Shown: one piece after another, positions 38,453-64,000 of the stretch
Numbering within the stretch: position 1 is the stretch's first letter
How the letters are laid out: every line of letters begins with the position of its first letter
Assembly (NCBI GenBank): GCA_004431415.1
Contig: QPMI01000138.1
Span: 1 to 64,000, forward strand
DNA length: 64,000 bases
DNA from: Cyanophora paradoxa CCMP329
Lineage: Eukaryota > Plantae > Glaucophyta
Direction: 5' to 3'
Notes under the pieces: generated by a model
Seen by the model: the letters and a program-made list of their open reading frames with translations, nothing else
What the model was told of the DNA's origin: nothing
Databases searched by the model: none
Made by a program: the position numbers and the translations under genes

Positions 38453-40296
38453 TCACGACCTTGAGGAGAGGGCACCCCGTGCGGCGCGGACAGCGGCGCG
38501 GGCCGCGAGGGCGGCAGCCGCGAGGGCCGAGGCCGCCACGGCGCCCGCGACCGCTTCCTGGCGGGCCCCGTTCAACAAAAGTGAGCTTGGACGGGGAGAT
38601 CTAGAGGCCTGGGCGGGGCCGGGGGCTGCAGGACTCGCCTGTACCCGGAAGGACCACAGGATGGAGGAGAAGGGGGTACAAGATTGTTGGGAGGCCTCCA
38701 TCACGTCGAGGCGGAGCATCTGGACCGGGGATACGCGTCACAATCTGGGGGTAGTGAAATGTGGCCGAGCCGCGCACCTTCGGGAAGCACGACGCGAAGC
38801 CCTGCGGGGTACGAGTCAGAGGCAGAAGACGCCGAGTGCCCAGCGGGGTACGCGGTTCTGGGGCGCGCCAGGAGGGCGAGGCGGAGGGGGCGGAGGGGCC
38901 CGCCCCGGAAGGCGTAGGAGAGCTCGGCAGCGGCGTCGCCGTCGGCCTTGCGGGCCGCCGTCCAGCCCCGCACCGCCGCCCGCAGGTCGCCCCCCCTCTC
39001 CTCCACCAGCCTGCGCGGGCCGGGGTACCCCGCCCTCGGCGCGCGCCGGCGGGCGATCCGCGTACCCCGCCCCGCCCCCCTCACCGGTCGAACGCGAGGG
39101 CGTCCTCGAGGGCCGTCCTGCAGCCGACGCCGACCGTCGCCAGCATCGCGTGCGCCGCGTCCTGCGCGCCCGTAACCCGGTGTGGGCGGGGGGGAAGGAA
39201 GCGGACGGGGGTACCGCGCACCCCGAGGAGGAAGGCGGAGTCCTCGTGGGCGTACCCCGAGGCGCGGAGGGTGGAGGGGCGCCAGGGGCGGGCGGCGGCG
39301 AGCTCGCGGGCGCGGGGGGCGAGGAGGCCGGCGAGCTGGGGGAAGCAGAGGGCGGAGAGGCGGGGGGCGTCGTCCGGGCCCGCGAGGAGGTGGGAGGGGA
39401 CGATGAGGGCGGCCCGCACGGAGCGCGGGGCCGTGGAGGGCATCAGCATGGCGAAGACGGGCGCGCTGCCGGCCCCCGGCGGGCGCGCCGCGCAGAGGGC
39501 CATCGTGACCGCCGCGGGGTCGAGCGCGGCGCAGGGGCCGGCGGGCGGCAGCTCGGCGGGGCACGTGACGACCGAGCTGGAGCCGACCTCCCGGGTACAG
39601 GAGAGGGAGCCGGCGGCAGCCATGGCGTCCCGCGCGGGGCTGTGCACGCCGTCCGCGCCGGCCAGCACGTCGTACCGGACCGCGATCGCCGCCGCCGAGC
39701 CCGGCCCACCCTCCATCGCGAACGAGGCGGTGCGGGCGCGCAGGTCGACGCCCGTGCAGCGGTGCCCGAAGAAGAAGCGGACGCGCGGGTAGAGCCGCCG
39801 CGTCCCGTCGACGAGGGCCGCCACGAGCGCCGTGCGGTCGACGGTCGTCATCGGCCGCGCGTACCGCCGCGCGCGCCGCACGCTCCCGTCCGGCCTCATC
39901 ACGTTGACCGTGTCGTACTCCACGAGCCGCGGCTCCACGAACGGCATCAGGCCGGCCTGCGCGCGCGCGCGATATCAGGCCATGCATGCTCGAGCCGCCT
40001 CTGGCGAACGCACCGCCTCTATTGCCGGGAACGCTCTCTTTCCCAGGATGATCGAGAACGAGGCGGGCGCCTCATCCCCGCACGGGTCGCCCCTAAAGTC
40101 GTACACCTGCAGGGAGCAAGCGGCGATGAGCGCTCGATTGATACAAAACCGTAGTACGCATTGAACCCGCAGCCGAGCGCTCGAGCTCAAGACTCGAGCG
40201 CACCTCCACGTCGACCTCGTTTGTGGTATCCCGCTTGGCGAGGAGCGCGGCGAGCAGGGCACCCGCCGGCCCGCAGCCGACGATGACTACCCGCAT
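38453..40296 (-). CDS. FAD-dependent monooxygenase (kynurenine 3-monooxygenase-like)
   Basis: MRVVIVGCGPAGALLAALLAKR (GxGxxG), YDFRGDP..SFSIILGKRA, YDVLAGADGVHS (DG motif), FLLGDAAHAM..VGVGCRTALEDA (GD motif). Confidence 0.85.
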
Positions 40297-40388
40297 CGCG
40301 GCTAGCTGTGGCTGTACCGCCGGGCCGTGTTCACAATCCAATGCATGCGTACCCCGGTGGACTGGATCAAATTCGGTGCGGCCCGGCG

Positions 40389-40906
40389 ATGCGCCTCCTG
40401 CTCCACGCGCCCACGGGCGCGCGCGAGCTATCGATTGGCGATGACGCAAGCGTCGGCGAGCTACGCGCCGCGGCCTCGGAGGCGACGGGCATTCCGCGTA
40501 ATGTGCGGGAGCCCGTATACGTAAAGTGCCGGCGCCGCGCACGCTCCCCTCTAGTTCTAAAACCTTGGGTCTTCGCGCACTCCTGACGCTCGTTCTTCCC
40601 TGCGCGTGCGCAGCACCTTATCCTCGTCGTCCCGCATCAGAGGAAGGGGACGTGGCCGATTACGCATGCACGAGCGCGAGCTCGAGGGCGCGCGCTGATG
40701 AAGGATAAGGCGAGCCTGCGGGCGGAGAGGATTTCGGACGGCACGCATCTGTACGCGGGGGGCGACCTGAAAGGCGGTTCGCAAAATCTATCTAGACATT
40801 TTCCAACAGCGTTTCAGCTCAGAATTTTGCAGGTTGCTTAACATCGATTGCCCTTTGCTTTCTGTGCTTCAAGGCACTTGATTTAGATTCGCTGATCGCT
40901 GTTTGA
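40389..40906 (+). CDS. Ubiquitin-like protein, copy 1 (Ubl with insertion, LKGG, Cys-containing hydrophobic tail)
   Basis: Exon 1 MRLLLHAPTGARELSIGDDASVGELRAAASEATGIPRN; exon 2 (40614-40776) ends ..DGTHLYAGGDLKG-G; putative exon 3 (40833-40906) CLTSIALCFLCFKALDLDSLIAV*. Clear paralogue of copy 2 with the same intron positions and phases. Confidence 0.65.
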
Positions 40907-41453
40907 TAATTGTACATGTACATATGATCGTGATTATATGTGAGCAGCTGCGCATGCCCAGTATGCTCCGTTCACAGGGCCTGCAGCTAACCGCGGCGCC
41001 CGCCGGGCCGGCGGCCCTGCGGGATCGATGCGCCTCCGGCCGGCGGCACTTAATTTTCGGCCGCCGCGGGCCCCTCCCTTAATTTTTAAGCACCCTAGCT
41101 AGGCCTTAATTAATTCGAACGACCCGGCGGCCATGCATGTGCACAGCCATTCTGAGACTCATGATCATGATCATGCATGCGCATGCACTTTAAATTTCAA
41201 GTTCCCTAGCTTCCGGCCTTCGTTCGAATTCTCGAGCTCTTATAATTAGAATTTCCTTTTCCGAGCTCGAGGCGATATCCTCTGGTGCAAACTCCTGGCT
41301 AGCTAGCTGGCTAGCGGGTCATGACGGTCCGGATCCGGATCCACTGCATGATTCTATCCCCTCGAGCTCGATCCCCTAGATCTCAAATTAATTCTGGTTC
41401 GACTCCGGCCGGCCGGCCCTCCGAATTTCATTCGGTTTTCCTTTCCAGCAACC

Positions 41454-42117
41454 ATGCACCTTTTACTCCACGCGCCCACGGGCGAGCGCGAGATCGAGAT
41501 TGAAGACGGGGCAAGCATCCATGAGCTGCGCGCTGCGGCGTCCAAGGCGACGGGGATCCCGCCCGAGGTGCGACGCAATTTCTCGACCACGGGAGCCGCG
41601 GCGCGAGCCCGCGCCATCCCACGCTGATTGGAAAGAATAGAAGCCTATAAACGAGAGATGGGCTTTGCAGGCGGCTCAAACTGGTCGCAGCGTAATTATG
41701 AATTTCAAGCTTCCAAAAATTGATTTCGCGCGCATGCGCAGCATCTGCTTCTCTTGAACGGGCGGCGCGCGCTTGCGAACGAGAGGGTCTCCGTGAAGGC
41801 TGCGGGCGTGCGCGACGGAGATCACCTCGCTGCGGCGGGAGACCTGAATGGAGGTAAGACAGCGCTGCCAGGGCGCAGCGATATGATTTAAGATCACTTA
41901 AGCTCTATTTCCTTTCTAGGATGCGGGATGAGCTGCCGTCTCTGCGGGGCACGCGGCGGAGTTGGATGCTCCCTCATGTGAAAAGTATCCGGATCTCCCC
42001 TAGAGCCTTCCCGCCTCGCTGCGCGTAATTGGCTTCGAATTTTTCTCCGCAGGCTGCGGCGTCTCTTGCCGAATCTGCGGCGCGGGCGGTGGGCTCGGCT
42101 GCTGCACGGTGATGTGA
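41454..42117 (+). CDS. Ubiquitin-like protein, copy 2, with two alternative CaaX-encoding terminal exons
   Basis: Exons 41454-41567 and 41742-41853 give a 76-aa Ubl (GIPPE; ..GDLNG75G76). Terminal exon A (41920-41981) CGMSCRLCGARGGVGCSLM*; terminal exon B (42053-42117) CGVSCRICGAGGGLGCCTVM*. Confidence 0.8.
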
Positions 42118-42509
42118 CGGCCCAGCGCCCGCGAGCACGAGAGAGGCAATTAATGTACAGCTAAACTAGCTTCTATCCGTAGGCCGTGCGCGCAGCTTAT
42201 AATATTAGAGCCATCGAGCGCCGACTCATTGTAAAGTCAACTCGGTAGCTAAAGTAGCAGCCAATCGATCTCGATGATTACGCACACTGGCCATAGGCTG
42301 AGCGCTGATGCGGCTGCTATTTGTAGGCGTGCCATCGCCGGGGGAAGCATGGAAATCTGCAGGTCCTACAGCTAGGAAGCGCCTGGGTGCGGGCTAGGCT
42401 CCGGTCGAGGCCTCCCTCCGCTCCAAAACTCGCGATCAAATTTACACGGTCGCTACCTACTGGGACGGAGCTCCAGGCTGGAGCCTGGCGGCTCGGTGCA
42501 ACCTTGCGG

Positions 42510-43281
42510 CTATCGCATGTCATTCGGGCCGAGGACTCCCTTCTTCAGGCTGCGCGGGGCGGGCGTCGGCGGCGGCGGGCGGGGCAGGGGCGGGGCGGCC
42601 CGCACATGATGTTGCCGTAGAGGTTGGACTCGGACGTGGCGATGACGCCGAACGCGTTCTTCGCGCGCTCGTAGAACGCGAAGCGCTCCAGCCGCTCCAT
42701 GTACACCGCGCGGCCCTCCGCCCGATCCAGCAGCTCCTGGAAGTCCGCCCAGCTACGCGGCGAGCGCGTGGGTGCGCGGCGAGGCGGCTCCGCGGCGCGG
42801 CGCTTACACTGGGGCCAGCTTCGTTGGGTCCTCGACCTGCTCCATCACCGCCGCCGGGCACTCGACGTAGGAATCCAGCGGGAGAAGCTCGAGAATCGCT
42901 GGCGGCTAGCGTCAGCGCGCCAGCGGACGGGGCGTGGCCAGAAGAGCGTACCGGCGAGCAGAGTAACCACATCGCAGCCTTCGCACCGCACCAGCCGCTT
43001 CCCGCAGGTCTCGGAAGGGAAGTTTGCGTCGGCTAGGACGAGCTGGCGGGAACGTTAGCTCTGGGGCAAACGGCGCGGTTTGCGGTCCTCCAACACTCTG
43101 CACACCTCGTCCCCGTGTCCCTGCGCTCGCGTGAGCTAGCGAGGGAAGCGCGAGGGCGAAATCGGCCTACCATCCGCGCGATGAGGTACAGGACCTCCGG
43201 GCTCAGAACCCTGCCGAACCTGTCGGCAGAGACCCACAGACGAAGGAAAGAGGCTGACCTGGGAATCCGCTTCAGCACCAT
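42510..43281 (-). CDS. FUOM: L-fucose mutarotase (RbsD/FucU family)
   Basis: MVLKRIPRVLSPEVLYLIARMGHGDELVLADANFP, AILELLPLDSYV, LERFAFYERAKNAFGVIAT, LYGNI.LKKGV. Confidence 0.92.
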
Positions 43282-43319: not shown

Positions 43320-49726
<6,407 letters not shown>

Positions 49727-56858: not shown

Positions 56859-57360
56859 AAAAAATGAGAGAGGACCTGATTCTGTGGCCCACCCCTCTTC
56901 ACCACCCTCACCTCTCCGAACCCACCCCAACCCACCCAATCCAGCGTCTTCCCAGCCATCACTCTCGCCAACCCTTCCGCTACGTCTACCGCCCTTCTCT
57001 CCCTCTGGTCTACCTCCCCTTCCATCCAGCAACCACTAGGTAGTATCTAACGTCTACTCCAATCGATCTTGCAAAAGATATAGCAGTGATTTGAGACGGG
57101 CCCCCAACGCGACGGTCTGCAGAGATAGCTTAATCAGCAGCTAGGCGTTAATACTGTGTTCTTCCTATCTAAATAGCGGAGAGGTTTCCAGGTTCTAGCT
57201 AGACGATAAAACTATATAATCGAAGCTGATTGCATATGCGAGTTTAGGTTCTAGTTAGTCAATAATACTGTGTGGATGATAGCGCCAGTAGCAATGTTGA
57301 AGATTTGGACAGGAAGTCCTAAAAAACGAAAAGATCGAGAGATGTTGAAGATTTGGACAG

Positions 57361-57605
57361 AAAGTATAGTAATGTAGACGAGCTTCTATGCGCTGGCATA
57401 AAAGTATAGTAATGTAGACGAGCTTCTATGCGCTGGCATAAAAGTATAGTAATGTAGACGAGCTTCTATGCGCTGGCATAAAAGTATAGTAATGTAGACG
57501 AGCTTCTATGCGCTGGCATAAAAGTATAGTAATGTAGACGAGCTTCTATGCGCTGGCATAAAAGTATAGTAATGTAGACGAGCTTCTATGCGCTGGCATA
57601 AAAGT
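57361..57605. repeat. Perfect 40-bp tandem repeat x6
   Basis: aaagtatagtaatgtagacgagcttctatgcgctggcata, six identical copies 57361-57600 plus a partial aaagt. Confidence 0.97.
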
Positions 57606-57770
57606 GATAGTGCGCTGATAGTGCGCTGATAGTGCGCTGATAGTGCGCTGATAGCTAGCCGGAGACAAGCCGGAGACAAGCCCGAGACAAGCCCTGTGCC
57701 AAGCCGGATCCCGGAGACCAAGCCCGAGCCAAGCCGTCAAGCCAATCGTTACAGGCATCGTTACAGGCAT
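57606..57770. repeat. Adjacent short tandem arrays (11-12 bp units)
   Basis: gatagtgcgct x4, cc(g/c)gagacaag x3, atcgttacaggc x2. Confidence 0.9.
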
Positions 57771-58427
57771 TCACTCCCAGCGATGCCGGAGCCCTAGCTT
57801 AGTGAAGCCGCTCAGCATTGGCTTGTACTCGATCGCCGGCCCGACAGGATCAGCACTGCTAGAGGCGATGCGCAGGATCGATGCGTTAGCTACAGGCAGC
57901 TCGCTAGCATTCTCATCGACCTCGGGGATCGCAACAATCGTCTTAGCAGGAACAGCAGATGCAGGAGGGGCAACCTTCTTATCGACCTTTGTCTTCGTGA
58001 TCGGTTCATTTAAAATCTTGTTCTCCATCTTAGTCTCAGCCGCGATGCCAGCTATAAGATCACTAGCTCGCTTCTTTGAAACTGTTTTAAGACCGGTCAC
58101 AGTTTTAATGAAATACCTGCTACGATTAGCCGTCTCTGAGATGTACAGCGGCCCATCGTCGGTATCCCTTAGCTTGCTAGTCTTGGTCTTCTTAGTCCGA
58201 GAATTCGGGATCTTATCAAGAATAGCGTTCTCATCGGCGGTAAGAGCATAGTCGTTGGATGCACCCTCACCGCCACCAGCGCGACGGGCTAGCGGGTAAG
58301 CATCAGTATCACCACTCAAGAACTCGATGTGATTCTTCTTAGTAGGGCTGGAAGTGCGCAGCCAAGACTGCATGTCTGTCGACTTCTTTCGCGGAGTGCG
58401 CAGCCGAGACTGCTTGTCTGTCGACAT
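57771..58427 (-). CDS. Viral hypothetical Lys-rich protein (218 aa)
   Basis: Uninterrupted ATG-initiated ORF directly downstream of mCP on the same strand, with an N-terminal duplication STDKQSRLRT/STDMQSWLRT. Confidence 0.7.
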   Translation of the reverse strand: MSTDKQSRLRTPRKKSTDMQSWLRTSSPTKKNHIEFLSGDTDAYPLARRAGGGEGASNDYALTADENAILDKIPNSRTKKTKTSKLRDTDDGPLYISETANRSRYFIKTVTGLKTVSKKRASDLIAGIAAETKMENKILNEPITKTKVDKKVAPPASAVPAKTIVAIPEVDENASELPVANASILRIASSSADPVGPAIEYKPMLSGFTKLGLRHRWE

Positions 58428-58452
58428 CTTTTAACTAGTAGTGGGAAAAAAC

Positions 58453-59329
58453 TTATGCGAACGATCTGTCGAAGGGGACGTACTCGCTGGCTGCATTCTT
58501 GATTGCGGATTTAGCAGCAGCAGACGTGTAAGAGACATCCTCGATATCGAACTCTAGCACGAACGAGAACTCCGTGTTTGTGACAGCGTCTGTTCCATTA
58601 TGATAGCGCAGCGATATGTCAAGTTCAGACAGCTCAGCGTTTCGATCGAAGCCTGTGACGGGAACACGATCCTCAGATGTGAACTTGATGAGCTCCCGAA
58701 TTTTGAGTCGATGTGAATCTTTGCGATCGAGCCCGTTGTATAGGGGTTAAGTGTCAAGATCGAGCCTTTGATCTGCTGAATGTACAGGAACAAATACGTG
58801 TGATAAAGTAGATCAACTGGCATATCGCTGAACAGCTCGTACGAATATTGTACGCCATCGATTGTCTCAGGTGTGTCAAGCTCACTGGAAAGGTCACTGA
58901 GAGTCTTCGCAAACCCGAGCAGGTTCGCTAGTTCGGCCGATGTGAAGCTCAAAATAAAGTCCGCTTCACACAGGAACCTAAGCCGCATTGAGATCTCTTC
59001 GAACTGAACGACGAACTTGCGCTGATAAGTAGTTCCACCGTAACTATACTGCTGGGTTTTAAGAAGCGTGCTTAGATAGTTTGCAAGGGAGGTTGGCGTA
59101 TAGACTCCGGGCTTGAAAGTGTTGGCACGTGTTTTCTCAACGCCAGAGGGATCAAGGGTGCCGGTGATAATTGCGGCTTGTGTGGACAGGTTGAACATGT
59201 TATGAAACAGTTCTAGCGAATCAACTCGCACCGACTTTACATTAACGAGGGCCTTGGGAGATTGATCTTGAAATTCGAGGACGTGCCTTCGAACCGGTCC
59301 CTAGAATCGACATTTACGCGGAGCTTCAT
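58453..59329 (-). CDS. Minor capsid (penton) protein, two apparent 1-nt frameshifts
   Basis: Corrected N-terminus MKLRVNVDSRDRFEGTSSNFKINLPRPLVNVKSVRV and C-terminus LSELDISLRYHNG..EFSFVLEF, typical of polinton/PLV/virophage mCP. Shifts fall at C/G runs near 59250 and 58695. Confidence 0.85.
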
Positions 59330-59373
59330 CTTTACAACAATATGCATGAAAATTTTCTGGTCTATAATAGCAA

Positions 59374-60601
59374 ATGGCGCAAGCAGGAACAACTCTAAAG
59401 GAGCTCCTCACTACCAAAGGTTCAAGCGAGCTTTATCTATCCCCGGGTCTCACTGTCGGTGTCAGCCCCAAGTTCAAGCCTTTCCTTGAAACGATCCGTC
59501 CGCGAGGCAACTCGTACGGCTTCGCGCAGACTGCCGCTTTCGACCTTCCGCGCAAGCAACTTCTAAACGGTGTCTCGCTATACTTTAAGGTCAGCGTCGC
59601 TGGCGGAGCGGCCGCCTCAGTGCTGCCGAATGGCGCAGGTGCATTTATTGAAAACGTGCGCTTTGTTCATGGATCCTTCAAGATGGTGATCCCAGGAGAC
59701 TGGCTTACTGTGAACGCGCTCATCGATAATAGCGTTGCATCCGCCCAGGCTTTTGCTAGCAGCTACGGCTTTGGAAAGGACGCTGCTCTTGAGATTCTCG
59801 ATGCCAGTCGCGAGTATGTGCTAAAGATCCCTCCCAGCTCTGGGACAATTCATACTTCCCGCTCCTCGCACTGGCTGACATGCCCACCGTCGAGATTGAC
59901 TTCCGTTCGGCTTCGGTGGTTGGAACTGTCGCTAGTGCTGTTGCAACTCTAACGGATTGTGCCCTGGTTTGCCAGTTCGTGAATATCCCTAGCGAAGAGG
60001 CTGAGTCTATGCTTAAATCTGCAAACGAGAGCGGTGGTATTCGAATTCCTTTCACCGAGATTATTTCAAAGCGCTCGAGGCAGTTAAAGACTGACGACGC
60101 GGGAATGCAGTCGAAATCTCCCTTGCCAACGTCAGCGGCCTTGTGCACGCGATCCTGATGACAGTGCGTAATGCGAATCACCTGGGCACTCGCAATCACA
60201 ATTCATTTGCTGGCAACGGAAATGCGCTGAAAATCGATTCGTTTGAGATCATGCACAACAACCGAACTCTCGACATCAGCAATAAGCCAATCTCTGGGTT
60301 TGTATCATCGTGCTATCACATTCCAACTCAATACCGCGGTGCAACCACTGGCAATTCAGCTCTTGGCTTCGAGGACGGAAATGTCTATGGGATTGTGCTT
60401 TCGAAATCTGGCAAAGACTCACTGCATAACGCTGTCCTCGGCTACACAGACTTCTTTAATTCCAGCAGCAGCTACTGCTCGCTAACTGTGACCGGCTGCA
60501 CAAACGCAGCGCCAGCAGTTGTTGACTTCCACGTCCTGCGCCACAATGTTCTCGTAATTAACTCGTATCAAATGTCAACTCTAAAGGTAAGTAACTTCTA
60601 G
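59374..60601 (+). CDS. Major capsid protein (double jelly-roll, divergent, about 410 aa), two apparent 1-nt frameshifts
   Basis: Three consecutive ORF fragments join at short C/G runs (about 59835 and 60100). Motifs GFAQTAAFDLPR..LLNGVSLYF, YFPLLAL, VEIDFR and LVHAILM, plus position between mCP and the ATPase. Confidence 0.8.
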
Positions 60602-61306
60602 ATGGATATCAAACTGTTTGATCCTACAGAAATAAAACTGCCTAAACGGTTCTTGTTTGTCGGTCCAACAAACTCGGGCAAGAGCACCTACGTAAAACAC
60701 GTGCTAAATGCTGTAGCGCCACAGTTAGACGATATTTACGTCTTCAGTACGACCGCATTTACTGGGCAATGGAATGATACAACACGACCAAGTAATATCC
60801 AGGAAGAATGGGATCCAGTTTTGGTTGAAGCGCTGCTAGAACGACAAAAAGAAAGAAGACGCAAAAATGATGATCGCAAGATTGCAATTGTTTTAGACGA
60901 TTTACTTGACAATGACCTAGTAAATGTCCACAGTGACAGACTCATGCAAAAGCTATTTACTTCTGGCCGTCATTACAACACCACCCTTTTCATAACGACT
61001 CAACGTCTTTGTGGCATCAGTCCGACGATTCGGCGGAACTGTGAGTACGTTTGCTTTTCGTCGATTTTGAGCAATGTTAAAGAGTTCAACACTTGCTTCG
61101 ACGAATATAATGCCGGAGCGAGTCGAGCAAATCTAATGCGTCTTTTCGTTGAATGGGGTCATTCGTTTCAGGTTTTGATATATGAAGGCGTGAGCGCGGA
61201 CCGCGTTTATGCTGTTGACAAAGCCTCTGGAACGACTTCGGCTCTATTGCGCTTTGTGCGCGTAAAAAAGCAGCGCGATCGAAAGTCGGTAGCCAGGACT
61301 GTTTGA
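60602..61306 (+). CDS. A32/FtsK-HerA-type genome packaging ATPase
   Basis: Walker A GPTNSGKS, Walker B IAIVLDD, LFTSGRHYN, ITTQ, ISPTIRRN. Confidence 0.95.
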   Translation: MDIKLFDPTEIKLPKRFLFVGPTNSGKSTYVKHVLNAVAPQLDDIYVFSTTAFTGQWNDTTRPSNIQEEWDPVLVEALLERQKERRRKNDDRKIAIVLDDLLDNDLVNVHSDRLMQKLFTSGRHYNTTLFITTQRLCGISPTIRRNCEYVCFSSILSNVKEFNTCFDEYNAGASRANLMRLFVEWGHSFQVLIYEGVSADRVYAVDKASGTTSALLRFVRVKKQRDRKSVARTV

Positions 61307-61469
61307 GCAACCAACTTGTATATTCTGGACGTGATGTCGCGATCCACAGGTAGGAGGCTCCTTTAAAAATACCAAAGCTGATGCAGTGACTTGGGGTGAG
61401 TTGACTCCTGCCTGGCCAACAGTCTTCTAGATTTAACTCTTCCTCTGCCGTTTCGAGTTCGAGTTCCAT
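61086..61469 (-). CDS. Small viral protein with FGx.KG..P.Y..WL motif (DUF3820-like); true 3' end uncertain
   Basis: ISFGIFKGASYLWIATSRPEYTSWLLKQ. ATG at 61469 follows the HNH gene; the 3' part overlaps the ATPase antisense. Confidence 0.55.
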   Translation of the reverse strand: MELELETAEEELNLEDCWPGRSQLTPSHCISFGIFKGASYLWIATSRPEYTSWLLKQSWLPTFDRAAFLRAQSAIEPKSFQRLCQQHKRGPRSRLHISKPETNDPIQRKDALDLLDSLRHYIRRSKC

Positions 61470-61500
61470 TAAAAAGATAAAGGGGTGTTATTCCCTTCAT

Positions 61501-62030
61501 TCAAACCTGTGGGAAGTTCAGCCGCAGAAACGGCTTGTCCTCTTCGCTGGTATGTTCTATAACGTAAGCATCACGAGCTTGAGCTGCTGCTTCGGCGGTT
61601 GCAAAGTAGCCGATGTTCTTTAGACGGCCATTGATCCTGTAATTTGCTTTCCATTTACAAAGTCGCTCATAGAAGCTGACGCCAATGAATCCTGATGTGT
61701 TTGTGAGCCGACGGTTTTGGTTCAACATCTGCTGACGCTTTGTCGCCAAACGTAGATTCTCGCGACGATTATCGAGTTTGTTATTATTAATGTGATCTAC
61801 AGTAAGGTCATTCTCAAGTCTCCCAACAATGAACGTATGCAAATACATATTCTTTCCATTGATCTTGCTCGAGGTATAACCATTGTTCAAACACCATCGT
61901 TTCTCCAGCACTCGATCAGCATCATCCTGTGATACAAAAGCGTAGGCGACGATTACTTTGCGCGATTGCGAATACCGCCTAACGGAATCAAAGCAGCTCC
62001 CTCTGGAACATCTGGAACGATGACCTCCAT
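61501..62030 (-). CDS. HNH endonuclease with C-terminal AP2 DNA-binding domain (one apparent frameshift near 61960)
   Basis: YLHTFI..TVDHINNNKLDNRRENLR (HNH_3) and TSGFIGVSF..KWKA..NIGYFATAEAAAQARD..LNFP (AP2). Confidence 0.9.
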
Positions 62031-62161
62031 CTGCGCAGCGAGCTGCTTGTCTGCGACTTTTTCGTTACATTTACAGTTTGCATTATCTTTAAGACTTAAA
62101 AGTCGCGCTAATTTGTCTTAAAAGGATTTATGTCTCTTATTATTGAGAGACAAACCGAACA

Positions 62162-62503
62162 ATGACTTCTGCAATTACTGCGGATTGCGTTGCGGTTAAA
62201 CGTGGCCGTGGGCGACCCCTAAGGTTCGTCTTTTAACAATGGAGCCTTATCAGCCGAAGAAGAAGGGCCTAAACCGATGGAGGTCACCCGGAGATTTTAG
62301 CAGAGCGACGCAGAAAGAATGCTGAACGCAATCGCAAACTGCGCCACACGAACGAAACATACCGTTTGAAACAGCTTGCCATCACAGCGAAGTATCGAGC
62401 TGAGAATCCTGATAGGATCCGGGAGTACCACAGGAATGCTATTGCGCGTAGATGCCTCGCGAAGAGCGGAGCTTCTGTAGAGCTCGAGGTGATGCAGCTT
62501 TAG
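62162..62503 (+). CDS. Small basic protein with AT-hook, frameshifted in this sequence
   Basis: MTSAITADCVAVKRGRGRP, then EILAERRRKNAERNRK..KYRAENPDRIREYHR in shifted frames. Confidence 0.5.
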
Positions 62504-63389
62504 CACCTGCTCGTAGCTTTGGCTCCCCTGCAATCTCAAGCTTCTTGAGCTCTCGATACTGCCGGCTTTGACCGCTGTATTTTTTTGTTTCGATCAAACC
62601 CTCACGTCTCAATCGTCTCTGCTGTCGCATTTGCACTTCTTCTTTTTCGATTCGTGTTTGAGGTGCAAGCTCACGCGGTTGACGTATTTCCGATGGTTTA
62701 ACACGTCTAGAAATTTCCACACCCTGTTTTGTAACGAGTCGAACACGGTTCTTGTCTGCGCCAGCAACTATGTACGTCTCCTTGCTTGGCTTTGTGGTTC
62801 CCTTCGCAAAAACGCTTGGCTTCGGCTCCAGGACTTGCACTTCGGTCCCTGTGCGCGGTATGTTCGAATTGTCTCGTTCAATATCGTTCTGTCGCTGTCT
62901 AACTTGATGCAGCTGCTCGGCTACCTGTGTATTTTCCCGCATCCACTTTGGTGAGTGCTCCCCGCCGAAAGAGCTGTGGGCTGTTTCATTGTACGCCTTG
63001 ACAATTGCCGGCAAACGTGAGAGGAAATGCGGGGAGCCACGAGCTTCTGTATCAGTCTGAATCAGTGCTCGCAATGTCCTCGCGAACCTGTCGATAATTC
63101 CCAGCTTGGAGCCTTTTGAAATGTGATCATCCTTAGCCACATCAGTGTGCATTTTCAACGAGTTCTCTTCAGCCATTTCCCGAATTGCTGCTGTGTTGAA
63201 GCCGTTGTCTCCTGAAAAGCCCCATATTCCAGGTAGCTGCTCGATCATTTTTGGAAGCTGCTTAAAAGTCTCGAGCTTACGGACCACAGCGAAACGGGTT
63301 GCAATCTCGACCGCTGCGAACAGGCGAAATCTCCCAATGAACAGCACGTCAATTTGCCACGCACCGGGTGGCGCAGTAATCTGGTACAT
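62439..63389 (-). CDS. Retroviral-like (rve) integrase of Polinton type
   Basis: WQID, VEIATRF, SGDNG, GIIDRFARTLR, LPAIVKAYNETAHSS..SP. Confidence 0.9.
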   Translation of the reverse strand: MYQITAPPGAWQIDVLFIGRFRLFAAVEIATRFAVVRKLETFKQLPKMIEQLPGIWGFSGDNGFNTAAIREMAEENSLKMHTDVAKDDHISKGSKLGIIDRFARTLRALIQTDTEARGSPHFLSRLPAIVKAYNETAHSSFGGEHSPKWMRENTQVAEQLHQVRQRQNDIERDNSNIPRTGTEVQVLEPKPSVFAKGTTKPSKETYIVAGADKNRVRLVTKQGVEISRRVKPSEIRQPRELAPQTRIEKEEVQMRQQRRLRREGLIETKKYSGQSRQYRELKKLEIAGEPKLRAGAKAASPRALQKLRSSRGIYAQ

Positions 63390-63398
63390 CTTTGTAAA

Positions 63399-64000
63399 TC
63401 AGGCGCGATTTTTATAATGTCCAATCGCTCGGGTGTTGATCCCGTCAGTCTCGAGGAAGCGTTTGGTATCAAGGGGATGTAGAGCCTGACGCGAGGTTCG
63501 TTGTAAATAAATCTCATGTAGTTTCGAGCGGAAACCGAGAATTCCTTTGATGTCATACGATTGCTTTTCTCCCTCTTTAGGGCAGACGCACCGGAAGAAT
63601 ACATCCCTTGTGAGTCTGTTGTAGTACGTCTTTTGAATACCCTTGCATACCTGCTTGTCCGTGGAATCTTCACGCGAATAATAGTAAGATTTCGGCCGGT
63701 TAGCGATCCACTCTGTCATTTGCAGACCATGGAGCTCATCCTTGAATAATCCGGAGTTTTCCCCATCGATCGTAGAGCTCGAACCTCATCGGCTGTCATG
63801 CCATCGAAGAATCGATGTGTCTCTGGGTAGTCGCTAACATCCAGCTCATGCTTGATTGAGCGTAAATCAGCATAGATATCTTTGGTGCGAACCTCGATGA
63901 TGAGACTGTCAGTATCCGTACCTAATAGTGTCAGCCGCTGGCCCCAAAGCAGCTTGAGCACCTGGTAGTAAAAGCGGTACATGTGCAGCTTGGAAAGTTC
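63399..64000 (-). CDS. Protein-primed family B DNA polymerase, C-terminal part (frameshift near 63750)
   Basis: ELSKLHMYRFYY, LLGTDTDSL, GLFKDE, RPKSY, CKGI, ALHPLDTKRFL..DGINTRAIGH. Confidence 0.93.

Follow-up and report, generated by a model that had tools for sequence, protein, structure and literature searches.

A small gene of Cyanophora paradoxa that may encode a cleavable ubiquitin-like precursor of two alternative cysteine-rich CaaX peptides

In this study, a window of 64,000 nucleotides of Cyanophora paradoxa DNA (the whole stretch that was analysed), which is GC-rich, intron-dense and eukaryotic in character, was found to hold a small unannotated gene on the plus strand that comprises a ubiquitin-like (Ubl) domain, a ubiquitin-type cut site at the end of this domain and then either of two Cys-rich tails with a CaaX end. 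Our tentative reading, to which we give a little less than an even chance, is that the gene encodes a conditionally expressed Ubl precursor which would be cut after its Gly-Gly (GG), releasing a Cys-rich peptide that is farnesylated and made in two versions by means of alternative splice acceptors. Ubl-GG precursors, CaaX farnesylation and alternative last exons are each known, but our literature searches turned up no account of a Ubl-GG leader joined to a CaaX peptide.

Structure, surroundings and expression of the gene

The Ubl gene is flanked by two minus-strand genes, for an FAD monooxygenase on the left and an RbsD/FucU mutarotase on the right, both of which are transcribed and spliced. 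Its first coding exon (41454-41567, plus strand, as are all features of the gene) comprises 38 codons, ends at the donor GAG/GTGCGA and carries beta1, beta2, alpha1 and the GIPP loop, that is, the first half of the Ubl. A predicted phase-0 intron of 174 nt (41568-41741, GT..GCGCAG), matching in position an intron of the paralog described below, separates it from the second coding exon (41742-41853), whose 37 codons plus one nucleotide supply the second Ubl half and end in D-L-N-G and the first base of Gly76. From the donor at 41854 (GAG/GTAAGA), two forms of the phase-1 intron 2 are predicted, a proximal form of 66 nt (41854-41919) that reaches acceptor A at 41919 and a distal form of 199 nt (41854-42052) that shares the donor and reaches acceptor B at 42052. 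Terminal exon A (41920-41981) completes Gly76 and adds a 19-residue Cys/Gly-rich tail with the spacing C-x3-C-x2-C and the CaaX end CSLM, and terminal exon B (42053-42117) likewise completes Gly76 and adds a paralogous 20-residue tail ending in CCTVM. A 5' UTR intron of 52 nt (41397-41448; donor CTG/GTTCG), whose acceptor is strong, rich in pyrimidines and 5 nt ahead of the ATG, is predicted from sequence only and is comparable in size to RNA-confirmed introns of 53-57 nt.

The phase-1 donor with two AG acceptors that the preliminary description had claimed is present in the sequence, and these predicted junctions, like the other donors and acceptors of the gene, resemble five RNA-confirmed introns of the neighbouring genes. 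The same description had given the Ubl as 76 residues ending in LNGG, the length of ubiquitin; the count is correct, with exons 1 and 2 encoding 75 residues and Gly76 split across the phase-1 junction and followed by Cys with either acceptor, whereas the equality with ubiquitin is only the net result of one residue fewer in exon 1 and one more in exon 2. The reading frame is open and the splice sites are intact in each of the four exons, whose GC3 values of 0.70-0.86 are coding-like. The precursor would be 95 or 96 residues long, and a hydrophobic N-terminal leader or signal peptide is absent from it. When all YAG/G.TGY sites on both strands were inspected (n=41), a short ORF with a CaaX end followed only from acceptors A and B, and in the six frames of the 64-kb window the ending C-[STAVLIC]-[VLI]-M-stop occurred only in tails A and B, so a chance origin of the two CaaX-Met ends is unlikely. 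Searches and folding were done exon by exon, and the spliced protein was translated only for a frame check.

With regard to expression, three RNA runs, each from a different study (culture conditions unspecified), gave no contig over 41192-42180, and because contigs show presence and not absence, we describe the Ubl gene as silent or rare in the sampled cultures. A search of indexed RNA runs with the stretch of the Ubl gene also returned no match. The same three runs showed the spliced neighbours, with contigs of the left neighbour at a depth of 3-7 and a contig of the right neighbour, at a depth of 440, stopping 65 nt from exon B. With no RNA contig on the gene, the junctions 41853>41920 and 41853>42053 are neither supported nor refuted by the three runs.

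The mutarotase gene (PF05025; 42182-43213, minus strand) is strongly expressed, with RNA contigs in two runs, and part of its conserved G-H-G-D stretch comes from a micro-exon of 12 nt (43108-43119), and the FAD-dependent monooxygenase gene (PF01494; about 38900-40328, minus strand) is weakly expressed and spliced. A further intron-rich gene stands at about 43700-48400 on the plus strand, whose ORF pieces, read by eye, resemble a putative SNF2/BRM-type helicase. A stretch of lower GC content extends over 56860-64000, and no link between it and the Ubl gene was found.

The ubiquitin-like domain, its tails and the upstream paralog

The first half of the domain is clearly ubiquitin-like. Exon 1 matched the Pfam family PF21403 (OTU1_UBXL) above the cut-off (E 6e-5) and aligned with ubiquitin 1-39 at z 7.9, with 11 of 39 residues identical. 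Its AF2 model, not fully independent in that the alignment included a ubiquitin row, gave strands at 2-7 and 10-15 and a helix at 22-33 with a pLDDT of 88, and ubiquitin made up nearly all of the top 50 Foldseek matches of this model (TM 0.72-0.79, E about 0.1). In exon 2 the likeness to ubiquitin is weak: the exon scored z 2.0 against ubiquitin (0.7 with GG fixed) with 7 of 37 residues identical, Pfam offered YukD at E 0.11, the Atlas gave a lead to Rad60-SLD/ubiquitin at 0.77, and the exon holds G47, L67, L73, G75 and G76 in ubiquitin register. With exon 2 alone, a PDB search and an hhalign profile comparison gave no match, and the exon folded alone into a helix (pTM 0.36), which is uninformative for a half-domain fragment. 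The claim of a Ubl, for which a beta-grasp prediction had been proposed as the check, stands for exon 1 with its beta-beta-alpha model but rests on weak similarity in exon 2; a full beta-grasp over the joined exons is what we infer, because the exons were searched and folded singly.

The residue at the position of ubiquitin Arg72 is Asp in both Ubl copies of the locus, which end alike in G-D-L-x-G-G. The specificity of E1 is a ground for doubting the conjugation of a freed Ubl lacking Arg72, and the exposure of a conjugatable Ubl, as previously proposed, is doubtful with Asp in this place; conjugation of the freed Ubl by ubiquitin E1 seems unlikely.

The tails had been described as paralogous, different in nucleotide sequence and alike in keeping CGxSCRxCG and a CaaX box ending in Met, and their comparison bears this out. 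Thirteen of 19 residues are identical between A and B, and pS (0.75) exceeds pN (0.20) with a Fisher p of 1.5e-4, the synonymous sites being saturated and the p value somewhat flattered because the tail exons were chosen for their similarity. All eight four-fold codons of identical residues (8/8) have changed, one serine is AGC in one tail and TCT in the other, and the 40-nt flanks of the two exons are unalike, with 12 and 8 matching positions on the two sides. The homology of tails A and B is not in doubt, and the codon comparison shows an old duplication, long kept under protein-level selection. This signal spans the whole time since the duplication and does not prove the present-day use of both tails through the donor at 41854. 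Four or five Cys fall within the 19-20 residues, the three motif Cys are invariant between A and B, and conservation starts at the first residue, with C-G-x-S-C-R-x-C-G kept. No family match for the tails was found in Pfam or NCBIfam, and the ESM Atlas gave no usable match for tail B.

A second Ubl copy, absent from the preliminary description, was detected 1065 nt upstream as a direct repeat at 76%. Its exon 1 (40389-40502, plus strand) shares 27 of 38 residues with that of the main gene and matches PF21403 at E 2e-7, and pN (0.18) is lower than pS (0.47) between the two, indicating that Ubl exon 1 is itself under selection. The paralog exon 2 (40614-40776, plus strand), 50% identical to exon 2 of the main gene, contains an in-frame insertion of 17 codons and ends in D-L-K-G and the first base of Gly76; an intron inside this exon was considered and rejected, since no GT-AG intron takes the insertion out in frame. 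After an intron of 56 nt, the usual size here, a probable terminal exon (40833-40906, plus strand) would supply Gly76, followed by C-x2-S-x2-L-C and by a tail that is hydrophobic and lacks a CaaX box. The likeness of this tail to A and B is equalled by 11-16 of 2458 control frames, the middle Cys of the A/B motif is missing, and its GC3 of 0.46 is non-coding-like. Because the tail is hydrophobic, lacks a CaaX box and has such a GC3, this copy may have become worn, or may be anchored in another way, and the want of a CaaX box also means that conservation of the lipid tag does not extend to the whole local family. The junctions of all three tails (A, B and the paralog) have in common that GG precedes Cys and that an intron splits the codon of Gly76, and we regard this as the best sequence evidence for the importance of the site.

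Two further observations concern the position of the paralog. The oppositely transcribed monooxygenase RNA starts at 40328, a mere 60 nt or so from the ATG of the paralog. The paralog donor at 40777 is in frame with the acceptor at 41448 before the main ATG, so that a two-Ubl protein could be formed across a 672-nt intron; such a di-Ubl is unlikely because of this length and because the 52-nt UTR intron from 41397 better explains the acceptor.

Relatives outside the locus were sought in several collections. Nothing came from a word-indexed protein search, whether the query was exon 1 itself or a two-copy alignment of either coding exon, and phmmer with exon 1 against 1.8 billion representatives gave three weak matches, one of them a polyubiquitin from a fish and the others repeat proteins that are unrelated. 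A degenerate DNA pattern of the shared tail motif had 53 matches in metagenome contigs, 52 of which were off-frame chance matches with neither a preceding Ubl-GG nor a similar CaaX end, the remaining one, from a human-gut assembly, being left out. The viral contigs searched held no relative, and one DNA run searched at 80% likeness held no further copy of 41192-42479. The homologue search proposed earlier yielded none in the protein collections or the metagenome and viral contigs, and GG and the CaaX box were compared within the locus. This lack of relatives is weak evidence of uniqueness, because only short pieces of exons served as queries and the genomes of other glaucophytes lay outside the search.

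Cleavage, anchoring and other readings

Under the tentatively preferred reading of a cleaved precursor, transcription would take place in a state outside the sampled RNA runs, and the joining of one donor to two acceptors, as suggested by the sequence and by selection, would yield Ubl-peptide A or Ubl-peptide B. The cytosolic precursor, without a signal peptide, would be farnesylated at the CaaX Cys and then trimmed and methylated, as expected from the CaaX-Met rules. A deubiquitinase or Ubl protease would cut after Gly76, as in FUBI-eS30 and SDE2, and release a lipopeptide of 16 or 17 residues that would start with Cys-Gly and hold three or four further Cys. The peptide, and not the Ubl, would be the working product, acting either as a signal, whether membrane-bound or exported, or as a metal/redox ligand, with the Ubl as a disposable carrier that permits a very short peptide with an exact N-terminus.

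The sequence argues for this in that the spacing of GG from L67 and L73 is that of ubiquitin, in that all three acceptors would restore Gly and then Cys despite the split Gly76 codon, and in that the conservation of the tails from residue 1 seems to exceed the needs of a tether. Ubls less than 20% identical to ubiquitin are cut by USPs, SDE2 by USP5 (PMC13572447), FUBI keeps GG and is removed from FUBI-eS30 (PMC8122580), ubiquitin fusions are numerous in algae (PMC6332867), and a CaaX box with Met as X favours farnesylation (PMC12197051). The FUBI-eS30 (FAU) and SDE2 precursors resemble the present one in having a divergent N-terminal Ubl with a final GG fused to a product, which in their case is freed by cleavage (PMC8122580, PMC13572447); they differ in that the product here is a 19-20-residue Cys-rich CaaX tail in two versions, that Asp replaces Arg at ubiquitin-72 and that cleavage is here a prediction. 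The nematode proteins GrUBCEP12 and Hs-UBI1 likewise join ubiquitin to a short peptide, which is released and active alone, but they are secreted effectors with a near-canonical ubiquitin and no CaaX box described for them (PMC5632807), whereas here the Ubl is divergent and a signal peptide is lacking. The algal fusions of ubiquitin with NiSOD, actin and P1 also place a ubiquitin domain before an unrelated product, but theirs is a recognisable ubiquitin joined to full-size proteins, and the survey mentions neither CaaX nor Cyanophora (PMC6332867).

Several points weigh against cleavage. The cut in SDE2 requires R73, the equivalent of ubiquitin R72, five residues before the cut; because Asp occupies this position here, ordinary USPs may be unable to cut, and cleavage after Gly76 would call for a protease that is dedicated or of SUMO type. 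Other Ubls also lack Arg at the ubiquitin-72 position. That three studies yielded no RNA for the gene while its neighbours were seen spliced also counts against the preferred reading, as do the failure of exon 2 alone to score against ubiquitin, the missing CaaX box of the paralog tail and the lack of a homologue in which conservation could be checked; GG could moreover be a linker, because the tails are Gly-rich. Two variants were rejected: A and B as one tandem peptide, since a stop follows A and none of the donor-like sites inside A that were inspected by eye reaches B in frame, and a self-cleavage of Hint/intein type, since 19-20 residues follow GG as against about 140 for Hint and Pfam gave no Hint match.

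The strongest rival, which we consider doubtful but well ahead of the others, is an uncut, membrane-anchored Ubl that would work like MUB/UBL3 and would have evolved independently, in which the two exons would switch the strength or location of the anchor, form B having a second, palmitoylatable Cys beside the farnesyl anchor, and GG would be a relic or Gly-rich linker. The layout of a small ubiquitin fold with a C-terminal CaaX box and an extra upstream Cys is that of MUB/UBL3 (PMC10511055), here with the ends CSLM and C-CTVM; the Asp at the Arg72 position, which may block cleavage, the hydrophobic paralog tail, which could be another kind of anchor, and the selection on the Ubl half itself would fit as well. 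However, MUBs are without C-terminal glycines, which are present here at 75-76 and followed by Cys in three independent junctions, and the MUB lap-bar loop (K/R)xPFG, which is 3-7 residues longer than the loop of ubiquitin and binds E2 enzymes (PMC4996978), is absent, the alpha2-beta5 loop being of ubiquitin length. No MUB model matched. Membership in MUB/UBL3 was rejected on these two defining features, GG and the missing lap-bar loop, and the contrast with that family drawn in the preliminary description holds. The conservation of C-G-x-S-C-R-x-C-G would also go unexplained by a tether.

It is improbable, in our estimate, that the tail, with its C-x3-C-x2-C and an N-terminal Cys left free by the cut, is a small module that binds metal or Fe-S, is lipid-anchored in the manner of plant HIPP proteins and is made under metal or redox stress, a reading that parts from the preferred one in the job of the peptide and not necessarily in cleavage. 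Ubiquitin-NiSOD fusions expose an N-terminal metal hook. Such fusions are widespread in algae (PMC6332867), farnesylated plant HIPP proteins bind cadmium, silence in standard cultures would fit an induced gene, and the four or five Cys of each tail, three of them invariant, would suit metal binding; against this, the tails match no family, the paralog tail lacks the middle Cys and no neighbour gene is metal-related.

Equally unlikely, we think, is that two farnesylated pheromone-like peptides of a cryptic sexual or stress stage are cut from the Ubl leader and chosen by alternative splicing, in which case a Ubl protease would take the place of the fungal leader proteases. The leader of a-factor is a short unstructured extension cut by Ste24/Axl1. 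Fungal a-factor-type pheromones share with the present gene a short cytosolic precursor, no signal peptide and a CaaX end, and their N-terminal part is removed (PMC3068285, PMC2134810), but here the leader would be a folded Ubl with a GG site and the peptide is richer in Cys. No receptor or exporter gene was seen among the neighbours of the Ubl gene, and no mating link was found.

Least likely of all is that one or both of the gene models are no longer in use, the locus being a decaying three-copy array in which exon B was left behind when a third gene was lost, or the gene being silent as a whole, for while the lack of RNA on the gene, the worn look of the paralog (17-codon insertion, tail GC3 of 0.46) and a selection signal dating from the whole period since duplication would fit it, the four exons are intact and coding-like and the 71 nt between A and B hold no trace of a third Ubl.

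Implications

Without cleavage, the protein would be of more modest interest, as a counterpart of MUB/UBL3 that arose independently and whose anchor could be switched. With cleavage, lipopeptides would have a new route of biosynthesis, and the gene would stand for a class of tiny genes missed by annotation, nothing in the protein collections having matched the Ubl gene. To our knowledge, sex has not been observed in glaucophytes, and if the peptides are signals, they would offer a direct handle on glaucophyte cell-to-cell signalling.
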